This document shows positions 37,191 to 47,845 of a stretch of 64,000 nt of DNA, piece after piece (the stretch's first letter is position 1; each line of letters opens with the position of its first letter). Both the position numbers and the translations under genes were made by a program. Source of the stretch: Rebecca billardiae RCC1528 (lineage: Eukaryota > Protista > Haptophyta); the NCBI GenBank assembly GCA_965240325.2, contig OZ251252.1:310001-374000 (forward strand), given 5' to 3'. Under the pieces are notes generated by a model. That model was not told the origin of the DNA. It searched no databases and saw only the letters and a program-made list of their open reading frames with translations.

Positions 37191-40100
37191 CTACTCTGCG
37201 CCCACGGCGTCGCAGAGACTGGTCACGACGGCGCGCACCGCCACCGCATCACGCTGGTCCACCCCGACCGCCTCCGTCGACGTCGACCGCACGCCACCAC
37301 CAGGTGCGTCCGCCGCGGCGTCCGCGGCGGCGGCGACGGCGGCAACGGCGGCAACGGCGGCGGGTACATCCGGGCCGTCGACACACATGGCGCACGGCCC
37401 ATCGTGCTGCGCGCCGGCCTCGGCAGGCGCGCCGGGCGCACGGACGCTCCCCGCGCCGCCCGGCGCGGCCGTCTCGCGCAGCGACGCGGCCGCCAGCCGC
37501 TCCACCACCGCCGCCAGCGGCACACGCCGCCGCCGGCCCGGCAGCAAGGCCGCCGCCGCGGGCGGCGCGGGCGTGGCGGGCGGCGCGGCAGCCGCGTGCT
37601 CGCGCGGCGCCACGGCGCTTGCCGCGCCGGGCGCGCGCGCTTCGCTCAGAAGCGTCGGCGCCGTCGCCACCGCCGCCACCGCGCCGCCCACGCCCCCCGC
37701 GGGCGCGCCGGCCGGAACCACCGCGCCGCTACCACCGCCGTCGCAGCTGAAGCTCAGCGCGGCGGCGTCAGCGCCGCGCCCTGCCGGCGTCAACGCGCCC
37801 GCGCGCGCGCGCGCCGCGCACAGCGCAGCCGTCGCCTCGAGCGATCGCCGCCGGCCGGCCGCCGGCGCCATTGCCGCCGGCGGGGCGCACACGTACCGCG
37901 CTGCGCCGGCGAGCACGCCGCGCCACGGCTCGCCGCCCCACGCGGGCTTGGGCGCGGGCTGCGGCGCGCGCGCGCGCGGCGGCGCGGGCGGAGGCGCGTC
38001 CGCCGCGGGCGCGCCGCCGGCGGCGGCCGCCGCGCCGGCGCTGGCGTCGCCGCACGCGCGCGCGCGCTTACGCGCGGCCGTGGGTGCGTCGTCCGCGGGC
38101 TCCCCGCCGGCGCCAGGCTGCTTGGGCGGCCGTGGGGGGAGGACGGCGGAGAAGGCGGCGGCCGAGGCGCGCGGCGCGGCGGCGACGACGCCGCCCGCGC
38201 CGCCGCTCGCCGCGCCGCCGCCCCCAATGCCCGCCGCCACCGCGCCGCCGCCGCCGCCGCCACCGCCGCCACCGCCGCCACCACCGCCGCTCCCACCGCC
38301 GCCGCCGGGGGCGACGAAGTTGATCGCCGAGTAGCGATGCGCGCCGCGCGGGTTCCGCGTCATCAGCGCACCGGCGAACACGTGACGCGCGGGCGCCGCC
38401 GCCGCCTCCTCGGCCGCCGCGGCCGCCTCGCGCCGACGCCGCGCAGCATACACGCGCACCGCAGTCGCGGCCTTGTCTGCAGCCGCCGCCGCCGCCGCGG
38501 CCGCCTTGCCCGCGCCACCGCTCGCGCTCGCCGCGCCGCCGGTGGGCTTGGGCGCGGCGGTCTCCTTCGACGCGATCCGCTCGCGCGCCGCCGCCGCGCG
38601 CGCCGCGAGCCGCGCAAGCTTCTCTCGCTCCGCCTTCGAGACTGGCGCGCGCGCGCCGCGGCCGCGCGGCGCGTCGGCGGCGGCCGCGCGCGCGCCGCCT
38701 GGGCCACGCTTGGCGGCGCCGCCGGCGCGCTTGGCGCCGCGCCCCTTCCGCCCGCCCGCCGCCGCCGCCTCCTCCCCCGCCGCCGCGGCCGCCTGCATCG
38801 CCAGCTGCTCCTCCGCCGACCAGTCGTTCTGAAACGGCCGCATCGAGTGGTAGTTGTAAGTCACCTGAGTGTCGATGCGCGCGCGCCGGGGCGTATTATA
38901 ATGGGTATGGGTAGAATGCGGGTAACGGGGGTGGGCAGTTGGGCGGGGGTGGGGTCATGCGGGTGGGGAGGGGGGCGAGGGCGCGGGCTCACCGCAGCGC
39001 AGCGGGCGCGACGCACACGCCGGCCCGCACGCGGGCGCGGTGGGGCCATGTGCACGCGCGCACACGGGGGGGATATGCGCGCAGGCCGCCGCCGCCGCGG
39101 CGCGCGCACCTCCTCGCCCGCCTTGATGTCGCGCACGGCGCGCAGCATGGGCACGCGCGGCAGCAGGCTGAACGCCTCTCCCGTGCCCAGCGGCATGAAC
39201 CACAAGTACGACGTCGTGTGGTAAGGGTCGTGATTGGCCATCGAGCCGCAGCTGCGCGCGCGCGTACAGGCGGGCGTGTGTGTGTGTGTGTGCGTGTGCG
39301 CGTGTGTGTTGTGTGTCGCCGTGTGTCCACGCGTGTGCCAGTGCGTGTGCCAGCGTGTGCCGTAAGGCAGTGGGCGTCAGCGTGGCGCGGCGTGGGCGTG
39401 GTGCGCCCGTGGGCGCGCGCAGAGCCGCGCGAGAGGGCGGCAGGGCTGCAGCTGTGCGCGCGAGCGCGCGTGCGCGCGCGCGCATGCGCCTGTCGCGCGG
39501 CGGCGTGGCGGCATCGCGACGGCACACGCACGCACCCTTGCGTCCACTGCGTGGCGGTCTCGCCCTGCAGCGGGCGGAAGCGGCCGTCCGCCTCGGGCGC
39601 CTCGCCGATCCCGGCGGCAAACTGCATGCCGTCCACCAGCATGTCCGAGTCTGGGCATAGCGCCAGGGGCGGGCGGCGGCGCGGGCCCGCGCGCGTGAGC
39701 GATCGCACGGGCGCGTGTGCGGACCGGACCGCGCGCGCATGGCAGCCGCGCCGCCACTTCCGCAGGCAGCACCCCTCCCCGCCCACCGCCCGCCACGCGC
39801 AACGACCCCACCGCGCGCACGCAGTGCTGACGAACCACCGCCCCCCCAGGCCGAGGATGAGGCGGCGGCGGCGAGCCGCACCTGAGATGCGGAGCACGTA
39901 CGATGCGCAGTGGTGGGCCTTGCGCTGCTCCCCCGCCGCCACTGAGATCACCTCGCCGCCGTACAGCGTGATCGGCTCGTCCTTGACGAAGTCGCGGCCC
40001 GCGTACAGCCCGCGGCCCAGCTTGGTGCCTGCCGCCGCGCGGAGGAGCGGCGCGCACGATGGCGGACGGGGGGCGGGTGAACAACGGCCGAGAGGGGGGC

Positions 40101-40976
40101 GGCGCGCGCGCGCGGGACGCGCGCGCGCGCCGGCCGCCGGCGCGGCGCGGCAAGCGCGCGCGCACCGAAGAGCTCGAGGGTGCCGGACTCGCGGATCTCG
40201 ACGCCGCCGTTCGCCAGCGTGCCCAGCGCGCCGAAGCGCGGGTCGACGCCGCGGCTCAGGTGCCCGAGTTGTAACAGCTCCCGAAGCGGCGCTAATAGCG
40301 CCTCCTGCTGGTAAGTAAGCCCAGTACCCAGGTAGGGGCCCAGGTAGGTGCCGTAACCGTCGGCGGCATCCGCGCCGTACTCCACGCCATAGGGCTCGTC
40401 GCCCGCGTACTCGTACCCGCCGTACCCGTTCCCGCCGCCGGCGCCGCCGCCCGCGCCGCCGCCCGCGCCGCCGCCGCCGCCCGCGCCGCCCGGCCCGCCG
40501 CCGCCCCCTGGCTGCTGCCGCGTGGAGGCGCGGCGCTCACGCTCGACGCCCGCGCCGAAGCTGAGCGCACGGTCGCGCACCGCCGGCGGCCGCGAGCCAC
40601 CGCGCAGCCGCTCCGCGCTGCGCGCGCGCGAGGGCGGCCGCGGCGCGGCCGCGGCCGCTGCCGCCTCCTCCTCCGCCTCCTCGCCTGACGAGGCACCGGC
40701 CGCGCCGTCGGGCTCGTTCGGGCCGGAGCGGGCGTCGTCGTCCTCGCCCTCCTCCGCGTCGCCACTCGCCTCGCCGTCGGCCGTGTCCGGGCCTTCGTCG
40801 TCGTCGCGCGCGCCGGCCGCGCCGGCCGCGAGTCCGCCATCGTCGTCGTCGCCGCCGCCGCGCCGCGCGCGCGCGTCGTCGTCGGCGCCGTCGCTGCCGC
40901 CGAGCAGGGCGGCGCGCTCAGTCTCGGTCCACGCGAGGAAGCCCTCGCGCGGCGCACCCTCCTCCTCCGCGCTCAT
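37191..40976 (-). CDS. SET-domain lysine methyltransferase with low-complexity flanks (exons 40976-40166, 40028-39882, 39650-39536, 39251-39110, 38864-37191)
   Basis: VEIRES..LGRGLYAGRDF..ITLYGG..YVL..VDG..GSMANH..LRAVRDIKAGEEVTYNY; splice phases are consistent. Confidence 0.85.
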
Positions 40977-41183: not shown

Positions 41184-44100
41184 CTAGACGGCCAGGTCAC
41201 TCCTCGCGGGCGACGGCTCGGGCATCGCTGGTCGCCTCCCGCCGCTGCCAGCCGCAGGCTGCGCCGCGCCGCCGCCGCCCGCGCCGCCGCCTGCCGCGGC
41301 GGCGGGGGCCGGCGCCACAGTGGCGGCTCCCGCGCCGCTCGCATCGTCGGAGGCCTGCTCCTCGCCCTCCTCGTGCACCGTCGCGCCCGCCGTCGCGCCC
41401 GCGCCACCCTGCCGCCGGACGCTGGGCTCCGCCGAGGTCGGCCTCGGCGCACACCCGCCGCCGCCGCCGCCGCCACCGCCGCCGGGCGCGCTCGTCGCCA
41501 TCACGTGCTCGGCGACCAGGGCGCCGTCGACGCCGGTGCAGCGGAGCATCACGGTGGCGCCGTCGAGCCGCTTGAGCAGCACCACGTCGCCGTGCACGGG
41601 CGGCAGGCAGCCGAAGCAGTTTCCCGAGAAGTCCGGCCGCTGCGCGTGCGGGTGCTTGGGGCCGTGCAGGTACGCCTGCGGGTCGCCCAGGTGGAAGCCC
41701 TCGTCGAACAGGTTGACGCAGCTGCGCGAAAACAAAAGAAAATGGAGCAGAGAAGCAAAAACCCGCAGTCGTCGGGCACGATGGCGGCGGACGGATGAGC
41801 GTGAGACGGATGAGCGCAAGGGTTGCGCCGGGCCAGGGCGCGTCGTTGCCGCGCGCGCGCGCGGCGCGCACCCCGCGACGAACGCCTCGTCGATCGACGT
41901 GCGCCCCCGCGCGCGCAGCTCGTGCGCGCTCAGGTGCGCGCCGATCGCGTCGACAAATCCGACCGCGAACGCGCGCGCCGCCTGATCCTCCGTGATCGAG
42001 TTCCAGCAGACGACCTGCGCGGCGCGTTGGGTGGGGGGCGGGCGTGGGGCGGGCGGCGTGCGTGCATGCGCGTGCCCGTGCGCCCATGCCCCTCTGCGTG
42101 TGCCGCGCGCGTTTGTTGGACACACACGAAGCGCGCGCGTGTGTGCACGCGCGTGTGCGTGTGTGTGCACGCGCGCGCGTGTGTGTGTGTGCGCGCGCGC
42201 GTGTGCGTGTGTGTGCGCCCGTGTGCGGGCGACGCCCCTCTCGCGCACCTTGAGCCACGGCATCGACTCGAGGATGGCGCAGCCGAGCACCGTCGTCAGG
42301 CAGCCGTTCAGGAACACAGCCTGCCGGGTGCGGACGGCGCGGTGGCGGTTACGGACGGCGCGGTGGCGGTTACGGACGGCGTGGTGGCGGTTACGGACGG
42401 CGCGGTGGCGGTTACGGACGGCGCGGTGCTGGCCGGCCAGTGGGGGCGCGCAGCGTTGGGCCGTTGGGCGCGCCCGCCGTGCCGCCCAGCCCCCCTACCG
42501 CAGCCGCAGGCCCGCAGGCCCGCACGCACCTCGATCCGGCCGTTGGGCGCGTCCGCCGTGCGGCGCAGCAGCGAGACAAACTCGTCGGGCGGCGAGTGCG
42601 TGTCGATGCGGCCGTTGGCCAGCTCGAACGCCAGCGCGCCCATGAACGTGTGCCCGCTGAACATGATGATCCGCGGGTTGAACGCCTCGAGCGCGCTCGT
42701 CGCGTCCGCGAGCGTCGCCGCCGGCTGCACCTCCAGGTACATCTTCGGGATGGTGCGCAGCAGAAAGCGCAACTCCTGACCCAGCTTAAGCGGCTTCAGA
42801 CCCAGCTCGTGCGCGACGCGCGCGGGCAGCGTCGGGTTGGCGAAGAGCGCGAGGAACTCGACGTGCGCGCCGGCGATCATCTCCTCGTTCTCCTCCACCT
42901 GCCAGGATACACGGGCCGTGGCGCAGGGCCGTTACAAAGGCCGTTACAAAGGCCGATACGCGGGCCGTGACGCAGGCGCGCGCCGCCCGTGCGACGTGGA
43001 CGCGCGCGGCGCGCGGCGGCAGGCAGCGCGCGCGGCGGATGGGCGGCGACGCGCGCGCGCGCTCTCCCCCCGCGCACGCACGCACACATAGGCACACGCA
43101 CACGCACACGTGCGCACACGCGAGGCGCTCCCCCCCGCGCATGCCTTCCCCCAGAGCAGGTACTGCTGCACGAACGAATGGCGCTCGAAGCGGTTAATCC
43201 GGTGCGCGCCGATGAGGAAGAGGAGAACACCGCACGCGCCGGACAGGAGCGCCTTCACGCACTCCTCCGTCACGTCCGCCGCGCCACCACCGCCACCGCC
43301 CCCGGCACTGCCGCCGCCCGCCGCGCCGCCGCCGCCGTCCGCCGGCCGCAGCGGCGGCGGAAGCGCCAGCACACCCGCCGCGTCGGCCAGCTCGACGGCG
43401 CACGCCGCGGCAAAGCAGAGATACAACGCTACGCTCACGAGCACGCAGAGGACAAAGTCCAGCGCCGCGTTCAGCACGGTCGCCGAGACCGCCAGCAGCA
43501 GCCAGACGAGCTGCCAGACCACCTGGAGCGCCGGGCGCGCGCCCCACGCGCCCGTGCGCCGCTTGAACGCCCAGTCTGACCAGAGAATCGTGTTGTAGGC
43601 GCAGAGTGCAGAGAGAAGAACGATCAGGCGCCACCACTGCACGCACGGGCTGGCGGGCGCGTACGTCGGCGCGGCAGGCGACGCACCAGCGGCGGTGGCG
43701 GAGGGCCCGGCCGCGCCGACCACCGCGCCGCGCCCCGCCGCCCGCTGCCCGCCGCCGCCGCCGCCGGCGCGCGCGGCGGCCCTCGCGTCGGCGCACGCGC
43801 CGCGGAGGCTAGGCGGCGGCGGCACGGCCGCCGGCGGCGCCGCCTCGCGCGCCGGCACGCGCCGCCGGGTGATCAGCAGCCCTGCGGAGTGACCAGGCGG
43901 GAAGGGCGTGCGCCATGGCGGTGCGCACGGCGGGCGGCGCGCGTGCCGCTGAGCTTCAGCTGCCGAGGCGGCGCGCGCGCGTGGCAGCGGCGGCAGCGGC
44001 CGCGCTCGGCGGGGCCGGGCGGCGCGTGCCGCCGCTGCCACGCGCACCCGCGCCCGACGCAGAGCAGAGCGCTGCCGCCCGTCCACCCATCCCTCCGCCG

Positions 44101-46232
44101 TGCACACACACACCGCCCGAGAGCGCAGCACCGCGCCGCCCCGGCCGCACGCACCTGCGAGACTCAGCATGGCCGCCGGTGCGAGCATGTTCAGTGCCGC
44201 CCAGCCCAGGGCCACCCCTGAGCCCAGGCTGTAGCAGCCATTGGCGCCGAGGAACGCGGCGGTGAGCCACAGCCGGCGCTGCACGCGCTCGAGCTGGTAC
44301 TCCGTCACGTAGCTGCGGGCGGACAGGGCGGCAGGGTACGGGCACGGGCACGGGTACGGGTAGGGGGTGGGGCCCGGGGTCGGGGCGGCGGCAGCGCACA
44401 GCCACGCGCGCGCGGTGGCGGCGGCGGCGGCGCGCGCCGAGATGGTGTGGCTGGTTGGGGGGGGGAAGGGACGTGGGCAGACACGGCGGCGAGGCGGCAC
44501 GCGACTGCTCCGCCCTCCGCCGTGCGCGGTGGGCGGCGCGCACACGGCGCACAGCACGGCCGCCGCCCGCGCAGCCTGCGCAGGGCGCCAGCCCGCTGCT
44601 GTCCCCGCGCTCCCGTGCACGGCGCGCGGCAGGGTATGTACGCACCGGTGGAAGCGGTCCTCCACCTCCTGGCTGCCCTTGAACTGGTTCGTCCAGCGGT
44701 GTTGCTGCAGGGGTAGGGTCCGGGGGTAGGGTTGGGGTGGTCACGGTGGGCGGGGTTCAAGACGAGGGTGACCGTTACATGACTACCGTTACACCATGCG
44801 GTGTAACGGCGCGGCGTAACGGCGCACACCTGCAGGTACTCCCGGCGCAACGAGCGCGTCTCCTCCTTCCGGAAGAAGCCGCGCCGCATCGCCGCCTCTT
44901 CGGAGGCGGTGGCCTGTGCACGCGTTCCCGCCGCGCGCGCGCGTGGTGTGTGTGCGTGTGTGTGTGTGTGTGCCAAGGGGCGGAGGGGAAGCCAGGGGGG
45001 CGCGCACGGCAGGGGTGCGCGCGCGCGCGCATGGGCGGAGGGGGAGGGCGGTCGGCGCGCGGCGGCGTGCGCAGAGCGCGCGCGTGCGTGCGAGGCACGG
45101 CGCTGCAGCGCTGCCCCCCTGCAGCCAGCCAACCGCGGCGGGCGGCGGCGGCGCGCGCGCAGAGCGTCCGTCACAGGGCGCGCGCGCGGTGCCGCCCGCG
45201 CGCGGGCGCGCGGGCGCGCAGCCGCTGGAGGATGCATCCGCACGCACGCGCCCGCCCAGATCGCAATCTCGGCAGGTCCCTCAGTCCGTACGCGCCCACC
45301 CGAGCCGCGCGCAGTCCGCAGCCACGCCATTCCACGGCGCCCTCCGCCCCCGGCGGAGGGCGTGTGCCGTGTGACGGCGTGCCTGCAGACTGGTGCCGCG
45401 CGCGCGCGGGCTGAGGGACCCGCCGAGATTGCGATCTGGGCGCCGCCCCACCCCGCCGAGATTGCGATCTGGGCGCCGCCCGCACCATCGGAGGGTCTCT
45501 GAGCCTCAACACGAGCGGCGCTGTGCCTGTGTCGGAGCGGAGCGTCGAGAGGCCTCGGCGCAGCGTGGCGCGCGGCACGTGCGAGACCTGGCGCGAGGTG
45601 GTGGGCTCCGGCGGCTGCGACTGCTGCCGCCCAGGCTCCACGCCCGCGCGCGGCGGCGCCGCCGTGCCACCGGGTGCCGCGCCGCCGCCGCCGCCGCCGC
45701 CAGCTCGCTGCTGAGCCAAGCGGCGCGCCTCGGGCGACTGCGGCAGTGAGACGCCACGCGAGATGCGCGGCGCGAGGCGCGCGGGCGGTTGCGGCATGCG
45801 CCGCGGCGACGCGCCGGGCGGCACGCCCTCGCCACCGCCGCCGCCGCCGTGCGCGCCGCCGCTCGCAGGCGGCTGCAACGCCATAAACCCACCGCCACCG
45901 CCGGCCACGCCCTGCGGCGCGCACGCGGGCGGCGGCTGCGGCTGGCGCGCCCCGCGCGCCGCCGACGGCGACGTCATCTCACACTCGCCACCGCGCGCCG
46001 TCGGCGCCGTCGGCGGCGGCCGCTGCTGCGGCGGCGGCGGCGGCGCGGGCGTCGGCGGCGGTGTGACAAGCTCGGAGGAGCGACCGCACGCGCCGTTGGG
46101 CGCGAGCGGGACGGCGGCCTGGTGCGAGTCGGGCGTGCCCGTGCCGAACACGTTGCACAGGTCTCGCGCGCGCAGCGCGCGCCGCGCCGCATCGTCGGCT
46201 TGCGACTCGGCCGCGGCAATCGCGCGCTCCAT
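41184..46232 (-). CDS. Multi-pass membrane protein with a C-terminal CHAT (clan CD, caspase-like) peptidase domain, ~968 aa (exons 46232-45486, 44913-44830, 44704-44646, 44312-44155, 43881-43145, 42898-42530, 42320-42249, 42014-41872, 41721-41184)
   Basis: CHAT: [65 protein letters not shown]. About six TM helices lie upstream, framed by WTNQF..VEDRF and [10 protein letters not shown]. One donor is probably GC (43144); an in-frame GT lies 27 nt further on. Confidence 0.8.
42331..42428 (-). repeat. 21-bp intronic tandem repeat TAACCGCCACCGCGCCGTCCG (~4.5 copies)
   Basis: Read directly; it ends next to the acceptor at 42321-42323. Confidence 0.9.
45253..45471. repeat. Intronic hairpin (~35-bp inverted repeat, 45253-45287 / 45408-45442) built on the (C/G)AGATCGCAATCTC motif, plus a third copy
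   Basis: The arms differ at two positions; a third motif copy is at 45458-45471. Confidence 0.75.
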
Positions 46233-46510: not shown

Positions 46511-47845
46511 ATGCGCGAGATCGTGCACATCCAGGGCGGGCAGTGCGGCAACCAGATCGGCGCCAAGTTCTGGGAGGTGATCTCCGACGAGCACGGCGTC
46601 GACCCGACCGGCACGTACCACGGCGACTCGGACCTCCAGCTCGAGCGCATCAACGTGTACTACAATGAGGCGACCGGCGGCCGGTACGTGCCGCGCGCGA
46701 TCCTGATGGACCTCGAGCCGGGGACGATGGACTCGGTGCGCTCGGGGCCGTTCGGCCAGATCTTCCGCCCGGACAACTTCGTCTTCGGCCAGTCCGGCGC
46801 GGGCAACAACTGGGCCAAGGGCCACTACACCGAGGGCGCCGAGCTGATCGACGCGGTGCTCGACGTCGTGCGCAAGGAGGCGGAGTCGTGCGACTGCCTG
46901 CAGGGCTTCCAGATCACGCACTCGATGGGCGGCGGGACGGGCTCGGGCATGGGCACGCTCCTCATCTCGAAGATCCGCGAGGAGTACCCCGACCGCATCA
47001 TGGCCACCTACTCCGTCTTCCCGTCGCCCAAGGTGTCGGACACCGTCGTCGAGCCGTACAACGCGACGCTCTCGGTGCACCAGCTGGTGGAGAACTCGGA
47101 CGAGTGCCTGCTGCTCGACAACGAGGCGCTGTACGACATCTGCTTCCGCACGCTCAAGCTCACCACGCCCACCTTCGGCGACCTCAACCACCTCGTCGCC
47201 GCCGTGATGTCGTCGTCGACGTGCTGCCTGCGCTTCCCGGGCCAGCTCAACAGCGACCTGCGCAAGATGGGCGTCAACCTCGTGCCGTTCCCGCGGCTGC
47301 ACTTCTTCATGATCGGCTTCTCGCCGCTCACCTCGCGCGGCTCGCAGCAGTACCGCGCGCTCACCGTGCCGGAGCTCACGCAGCAGATGTTCGACGCGAA
47401 GAACATGATGGCCGCCGCCGACCCGCGCCACGGCCGCTACCTGACGGCGGCGGCGCTCTTCCGCGGCCGCATGTCGACCAAGGAGGTGGACGAGCAGATG
47501 CTCAACGTGCAGAACAAGAACTCGTCGTACTTCGTCGAGTGGATCCCGAACAACATCAAGTCGTCCATCTGCGACATCCCGCCCAAGGGCCTCAAGATGG
47601 CCGTCGCGTTTGTCGGCAACTCGACGTGCATGCAGGAGGTGATGAAGCGCATCTCCGAGCAGTTCACCGCCATGTTCCGCCGCAAGGCGTTCCTCCACTG
47701 GTACACGGGCGAGGGCATGGACGAGATGGAGTTCACCGAGGCGGAGTCGAACCTCAACGACCTCGTCTCCGAGTACCAGCAGTACCAGGACGCCTCCGCC
47801 GAGGAGGAGGGCGAGTTCGACGAGGAGGAGGGCGAGGAGTACTAG
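46511..47845 (+). CDS. TUBB: Beta-tubulin (444 aa, intronless, somewhat divergent)
   Basis: [17 protein letters not shown] start, GGGTGSG signature and acidic tail. Confidence 0.98.

Follow-up and report, generated by a model that had tools for sequence, protein, structure and literature searches.

Can a membrane sensor of the kind that anchors adenylyl cyclases carry a protease as its output? The question is raised by a gene of the haptophyte Rebecca billardiae RCC1528, which lies in a stretch of 64,000 nucleotides (GenBank assembly GCA_965240325.2, contig OZ251252.1, positions 310,001 to 374,000, forward strand; hereafter the window, numbered from its first letter). At 41184-46232 the first-pass annotation of the window, made from the letters alone, had read an adenylyl-cyclase-type membrane cassette fused to an intact CHAT protease. 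The present analysis leads us to think, with somewhat better than even confidence, that an intact gene at this locus encodes a polytopic receptor-protease, in which a six-transmembrane (6TM) sensor continues through an exit helix into a CHAT protease.

A nine-exon gene and its haptophyte relatives

The region is extremely GC-rich (70-82% GC content) and prokaryote-style lists of open reading frames (ORFs) hold only fragments at this locus; the pieces used in the first-pass annotation were recovered by translating candidate minus-strand exons. The gene runs on the minus strand from 46232 to 41184 in nine exons, and its coding sequence of 2,907 nt gives a product of 968 residues with a single terminal stop, TAG. 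Every exon junction was set by tblastn of two uninterrupted homologues, P0002 (851 residues) and P0004 (651 residues), against the window; both had been found by a word-based protein search with the ORF containing the hydrophobic part as query. With P0002 the product shares 57% of 817 aligned residues, which cover its residues 1-918, and with P0004 its identity is 62%. All acceptors are CAG, and six of the seven introns with a GT donor begin in a strikingly uniform way with GTGCG followed by G, T or C. The donor of exon 2 is GTGTGC and that of exon 5 is GCATGC, which makes intron 5 (43144-42899), the one flagged in the first-pass annotation, a GC-AG intron (AAG/GCATGC...CAG). The nine exons proposed there do splice into one protein, as a single open frame with consistent splice signals, and the motifs it had listed are all present: WTNQF (residue 281), EVEDRF (290), the motif at residue 577, FSGH (675-678), FLNGC (721-725), GDPQAYLH (802) and the motif at residue 825. 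No paralogue of the gene was found elsewhere in the window.

The fusion of the membrane part and the protease part in one gene is directly visible in the relatives. An 8.25-kb contig with further genes beside it holds P0002 as a single unbroken ORF, and P0004 is the sole ORF of a 2.3-kb transcript-like contig. Both have the parts in the same order as the window protein, transmembrane (TM) helices and then CHAT, and since this order stands in uninterrupted ORFs of two relatives, the TM and CHAT parts belong to one gene; the case of two separate genes, named beforehand as what would refute the fusion, was not encountered. Nineteen more proteins of 600-930 residues share this order, among them Emiliania huxleyi EMIHUDRAFT_451958, two proteins of Prymnesium parvum and one of Haptolina ericina. 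A survey of haptophyte homologues had been suggested at the outset, and the 6TM-CHAT order proved to be conserved across haptophyte algae. An exhaustive HMMER search returned 569 cluster representatives at E<=1e-3, of which 222 reach E<=1e-10, and the named family members are all haptophytes. The family is haptophyte-wide and includes the ecologically dominant algae Emiliania, Prymnesium and Haptolina as well as pavlovophyte-like relatives of this genome. A word-based search with the TM part as query reached no further than the closest relatives, and pattern scans gave no relative in bacterial or archaeal genomes or in viral contigs; as such scans reach close relatives only, their negative outcome says little about origin. 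The contig of P0002 (Logan SRR30664515, 8250 nt) also showed that this orthologue is intronless, as opposed to the eight introns of the window gene, and that its neighbours are a WD40/PFU/PUL (Doa1-like) gene and a SET-domain gene.

The same CHAT subtype occurs behind other signalling parts. In P0053 (P. parvum AB1Y20_007163) and P0070 it follows an ANF_receptor ectodomain and one TM helix, and a long insert lies between the His-bearing and the Cys-bearing half of the CHAT domain. It stands C-terminal to protein kinases in P0106, P0132 and P0155, with PH, Ank, PfkB or RRM domains also found among these proteins, and at the C-terminus of P0044 (P. parvum AB1Y20_023332, 1983 residues), which is named as a phosphoinositide phospholipase C (PLC). 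Its recurrence after ANF-receptor, kinase and PLC parts indicates that this CHAT subtype is a portable signalling output in these algae.

The CHAT domain and its catalytic dyad

The catalytic residues are encoded in two adjacent exons. Exon 6 (42530-42898, residues 596-718; 75-80% identical to P0004 and P0002) holds the N-terminal half of the domain with the catalytic His678 in FSGH (codon 42650-42652), and exon 7 (42249-42320, residues 719-742) holds the catalytic Cys725 in VFLNGC (codon 42300-42302), placed by conservation and by alignment to SAVED-CHAT. Exon 8 (41872-42014, residues 743-790) would form beta5 and a helix with a W..TEDxAAR motif, predicted in the orthologue model as strand 438-442 followed by helix 448-469; conservation of the motif residues W442, E447, D448, A450, A451 and R452 of P0004 is 90% or higher, and the conserved E/D of the motif may hint at a protease preference for basic P1 residues. 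Exon 9 (41184-41721, residues 790-968 and the stop) was delimited by tblastn and composition and closes the CHAT fold before a Gly/Ala-rich tail; the predicted local distance difference test (pLDDT) of the P0004 model is about 87-94 through residue 560 and then falls below 50.

Both sequence and predicted structure connect this domain to a characterised protease. Among PDB sequences, phmmer with P0004 found one CHAT chain, 8tl0_A, at E=0.048 with both motifs aligned, and the family profile A3, built from 34 diverse members, matched the same chain at E=9.7e-16 (60.6 bits), a significant similarity to a bona fide CHAT domain. The AlphaFold2 (AF2) model of P0004 has a pLDDT of 76.6, and Foldseek with it returned 8tl0 first (E=1.2e-6), followed by caspases, separase, C11 and Csx29, so that the caspase-hemoglobinase alpha/beta fold of CHAT domains (PF12770; clan CD) is recovered. 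PDB entry 8TL0 is a SAVED-CHAT filament activated by cyclic triadenylate (cA3), and the double exchange H375A/C422A abolishes its activity (10.1101/2023.06.23.546230). In both HMMER alignments FSGH and LNGC fall on chain positions 355 and 402 of 8tl0_A, which would be H375 and C422 under a constant offset of 20 deduced from the residue ranges of the alignments. Moreover, strands 368-372 and 415-419 of the P0004 model precede the catalytic His and Cys, at the beta3 and beta4 positions. The His is present in 21/21 and the Cys in 19/19 residue-bearing rows of the family alignment A1, and each of them in 33/34 rows of A3. Judged by its predicted fold and its profile similarity, the protease domain is of CHAT type, clan CD, with a complete His678/Cys725 dyad, and the fold found by Foldseek and profile together with the dyad kept in relatives bears out the original reading of a CHAT domain with both catalytic motifs. 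The sole A3 member without both residues, P0095 (347 residues; His to Pro, Cys to Ser), is likely a pseudoprotease on its sequence, joint loss of both catalytic residues being the usual pseudoenzyme pattern.

Exon 9 also encodes a His/Cys motif, GDP..YLH.P.HPH...C.GC.PPVHG (41589-41687, minus strand; residues 802-834), delimited by conservation and the order of secondary structure. In P0004 numbering, its conservation in A1 is 17/19 for H505, 17/19 for H509, 18/18 for H511, 20/20 for C521, 19/19 for C524 and 16/19 for H529, and it is modelled at a pLDDT of about 87-94. The motif comes after the last helix and before the final core beta-strand (532-538), and the alignments to caspase-7 end at model residues 539-540; from this order and this alignment end we place it at caspase loop L4, beside the substrate groove. 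It is a candidate metal or redox site, and more divergent soluble members of the family do not have it. The protein had been thought to end in this stretch as a His/Cys-rich tail. The stretch is indeed there, but the end is not, because a small beta-sheet and then a Gly/Ala-rich low-complexity tail of about 100 residues lie beyond it.

The six-helix membrane module and the surroundings of the gene

The N-terminal five exons lead into and build the membrane part. Exon 1 (45486-46232, residues 1-249), a Pro/Ala/Gly/Arg-rich region, was recognised by composition and by tblastn of P0002 1-182 (E=3e-19); its ends, an N-terminal helix and a TTSRQVS...LRLRDPP block, are conserved in that search, and it is probably disordered and cytosolic. 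Exon 2 (44830-44913, residues 250-277) encodes a basic juxtamembrane helix, 83% identical to P0004 5-28 and predicted as helix 16-26 in the orthologue model. Exon 3 (44646-44704, residues 278-297) carries the motif WTNQF.G..EVEDRF in front of TM1, in which conservation across A1 and A2 reaches 90% or more at N34, F36, G38 and E43 of P0004, and exon 4 (44155-44312, residues 297-350) encodes TM1 and TM2, assigned by hydropathy and segment mapping and predicted as helices 40-79 and 84-104 in the orthologue. Exon 5 (43145-43881, residues 350-595), set by tblastn, hydropathy and model, encodes the cytosolic loop 2-3, TM3 to TM6 and, in one stretch with TM6, the exit helix, whose residues R273, N275, R276, R279 and F282 (P0004) are at least 90% conserved.

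Hydropathy of the window protein shows six hydrophobic helices, as do the AF2 models of the orthologue. The model of the TM part alone (P0004 1-300) has a pLDDT of 85.7 and a predicted template modelling score (pTM) of 0.83, and in it TM6 and the exit helix form one helix, residues 242-299, that runs into the protease. In an exhaustive structural alignment of this model against 48,161 representative PDB chains, the 6TM-GGDEF diguanylate cyclase ImcA ranked first (score 16.0, 219 aligned residues), followed by adenylyl cyclase (AC) 9 (14.1) and AC5 (13.3); designed helical proteins follow from rank 4 onward at about 10-11, with Rv1625c at rank 10 (9.5). Foldseek likewise put ImcA first (probability 1.00, E=0.034), with AC8 reaching the top query TM-score, 0.48, and the best match in the ESM Atlas was a bacterial MASE8 cluster (TM-score 0.62/0.73, 216 aligned residues, root-mean-square deviation (rmsd) 2.8 A). 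Six TM helices, both ends cytosolic, and a TM6 that goes on as a cytosolic helix make up the adenylyl-cyclase cassette, and all these features were found, as was the 6TM fold shared with the sensor domain of MASE8 and ImcA. Structure-based identity to the PDB matches is 8-13%, and the profile A2 of the TM part gave no match at E<=10 among all PDB sequences. In P0002, P0003 and P0004 Pfam returned, at E<=10, neither Guanylate_cyc or another cyclase family, the domain past the exit helix being CHAT, nor the MASE8 model PF20968. Since sequence-level homology was not detected, the term 'adenylyl-cyclase-type' of the first-pass annotation is kept as a statement of fold only: the cyclase-anchor fold stood, ImcA and the MASE8 cluster came closest with AC9, AC5 and AC8 second, and the likeness that it had proposed between the flanking motifs (WTNQF..EVEDRF, R..RFERHSF) and the borders of the cyclase cassette is putative. 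For want of a MASE8 match in Pfam, the module is likewise taken to share that fold and not filed as a member. It is thus quite probable, on the predicted models, that the module has a cyclase-type 6TM sensor fold, assigned neither to the AC-anchor nor to the MASE8 family. Transporter identities (TctA, TauE, Serpentine_r_xa; Pfam E 0.016-0.16) were rejected as sub-threshold hydrophobic matches, and rows of G-protein-coupled receptors that whole-model Foldseek gave for the TM part were disregarded at rmsd >20 A.

The charge distribution gives the topology. On the proposed cytosolic side (before TM1, loop 2-3 and after TM6) there are 27 lysines and arginines, as opposed to 5 on the outer side, and by the positive-inside rule both termini, and with them the protease, are therefore in the cytosol, as in cyclases. 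The best-conserved residues of the anchor lie at the cytosolic membrane face and in TM4 and not in the outer loops, in the motifs TNxF.G..E before TM1, WWR at TM3, Q..W in TM4, LDF in loop 4-5 and RxNRFERxSF after TM6; the length of loop 5-6 is highly variable. This pattern is more in keeping with a signal received within the membrane or from a partner and passed on by the exit helix than with a classical extracellular pocket.

Around the gene, an intronless beta-tubulin gene (46511-47845, plus strand) stands head-to-head with the CHAT gene, and the distance of only about 280 bp between the start codons at 46232 and 46511 points to one bidirectional promoter for both. On the strand of the CHAT gene, and some 200 bp beyond its stop, lies an ORF of 342 residues rich in Gly, Ala, Asp and Glu (39948-40976, minus strand). 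Several introns contain repeats: intron 6 has, at 42322-42428, five tandem copies of the 21-nt unit GGCGGTTACGGACGGCGCGGT (plus strand), introns 5 and 7 have (GT/GC)-rich microsatellite-like runs, and intron 1 has a 43-nt inverted repeat (45253-45295/45400-45442) that is 91% complementary, with 104 nt between its arms and a direct tandem duplicate of one arm at 45419-45481. The repeat of intron 1 may be a small hairpin or an element like a miniature inverted-repeat transposable element (MITE).

Proposed gating of the protease and comparison with known systems

How could such a protein signal? The disordered cytosolic N-terminus would lead into the six-helix module, which might form a homodimer, as in ImcA and the bacterial cyclase Rv1625c, and take up a signal at or within the membrane, whether from a lipid, a small ligand or a partner protein. 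The exit helices, about 25 cytosolic residues unbroken from TM6, could carry the signal to the CHAT domains and order or pair two of them, by analogy with SAVED-CHAT filaments and the proximity of initiator caspases. An activated CHAT domain would then cut cytosolic substrates or the receptor's own tails and so spread the signal, and the His/Cys loop at the L4 position would probably bind metal and shape the substrate groove. We infer such gating from the parallels with ImcA, adenylyl cyclases, SAVED-CHAT and the initiator caspases, and the role in cell death or antiviral defence that the first-pass annotation held possible is inferred as well. Its proposal that a protease has taken the place of the cyclase would be an evolutionary scenario.

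Several results weigh against a gated receptor-protease. Pfam found no CHAT match in any single-exon translation, the pieces being too short for so divergent a family; on P0002 the match to PF12770 (E=1.3e-4, 21.9 bits) stays below the gathering score of 24, and only 2/21 members have CHAT at E<0.01. Both structures are predictions for the orthologue P0004, at 62% identity a proxy for the window protein, and the whole exon model, with its GC-AG junction, was derived from homology, a look for RNA sequencing runs of this genome having returned none. Outer loops that are short or poorly conserved count against a classical extracellular ligand site. They would also suit a 6TM module that only localises the CHAT domain, with control by tail phosphorylation, by inhibitors or by the metal or redox state of the His/Cys loop. 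The soluble settings of the same CHAT subtype with kinases and PLC, and a likeness to sensors that is confined to the fold, speak for such a passive anchor as well. However, its most conserved residues (TNxF.G..E before TM1, the LDF loop 4-5 and RxNRFERxSF) cluster where the exit helix leaves the membrane, and a TM6 predicted to be continuous with the linker into the protease is the design of a transducing anchor, so that we hold a merely localising module to be unlikely, if still worth serious consideration.

More doubtful still is a receptor whose main substrate is itself or its dimer partner, the signal being a freed disordered N- or C-terminal tail, as has been suggested for the anti-sigma factor DdvA of Myxococcus xanthus. 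On either side the folded core is bordered by a long disordered tail that contains conserved islands, and autoproteolysis in trans has been proposed for the dimeric TM-CHAT protein DdvA (PMC11506125), but we recognised no cleavage site or released effector domain, and the tails are poorly conserved across the family. A non-catalytic scaffold (pseudoprotease), or a nine-exon model that joins separate or decayed genes, could draw on the homology-based exon model, the sub-threshold Pfam score and P0095, but is very improbable given a frame open over nine exons with consistent splice signals, two relatives with uninterrupted ORFs in the same order, the dyad in 33/34 members and a profile E-value of about 1e-15 to a proven CHAT protease.

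The receptor-protease, with a 6TM sensor acting on CHAT, would be a testable case of membrane signalling by proteolysis instead of by a second messenger. We found no description in the literature of the 6TM-CHAT architecture, of haptophyte CHAT proteins or of the E. huxleyi gene, and the membrane-tethered CHAT proteins described there are bacterial only; public databases auto-name the haptophyte proteins 'CHAT domain-containing protein'. The supposition that the architecture had gone without description thus agrees with our search. In bacterial immunity CHAT proteases have lately come to the fore as effectors that can be switched (Craspase, SAVED-CHAT, DdvA), and to our knowledge those of eukaryotes, apart from separase, are almost unstudied. 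Tentatively, haptophytes could possess a set of receptor-proteases in which a cyclase-type 6TM module gates CHAT, beside the ANF-receptor-, kinase- and PLC-CHAT proteins, with an output free of second messengers that could partly explain the caspase-like activity seen when bloom-forming species die from virus infection or stress. The family may also supply a fresh candidate for the caspase-like activities that measurements on dying haptophytes have shown for a long time. The locus also touches the open question of whether 6TM cyclase anchors are portable sensor modules, a view supported by finding the same 6TM fold on an unrelated output.

Among known systems, SAVED-CHAT of type III-B CRISPR (PDB 8TL0) is bacterial and soluble and is gated by cA3 on its SAVED domain with filament formation; the window protein differs from it in having a 6TM module as the N-terminal partner and the extra His/Cys loop. 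Initiator caspases and metacaspases belong to a different family of the same clan, and the window protein has neither their p20/p10 processing signatures nor death-fold adaptors. Receptor guanylyl cyclases combine an ANF-receptor ectodomain, one TM helix and a cytosolic output. P0053 and P0070, paralogous to the window gene, resemble them in layout but lack the kinase-homology and cyclase domains, and offer a parallel case of CHAT standing at the cyclase position. DdvA is a transmembrane anti-sigma factor with TPR-CHAT that is dimeric and for which signalling by regulated proteolysis has been proposed (PMC11506125). It shares with the window protein a CHAT domain held at the membrane, but is single-pass, with a periplasmic CHAT after TPRs and an incomplete active site, whereas the window protein has six TM helices, no TPR, a CHAT domain predicted to be cytosolic and a complete dyad. 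On the side of the anchor, ImcA of Pseudomonas aeruginosa (PDB 8WCN) is a homodimer through its 6TM domain, which drives a GGDEF domain (PMC10904736); like MASE8 it is bacterial, its GGDEF output sits on a flexible hinge, and no sequence-level similarity to the window family was detected. The class III adenylyl cyclase anchors compared here were those of AC9 (6R3Q), AC5 (8SL3), AC8 (8BUZ) and Rv1625c (7YZI), and 6TM cyclase anchors can act as receptors and be exchanged with a quorum-sensing receptor (PMC4821796).

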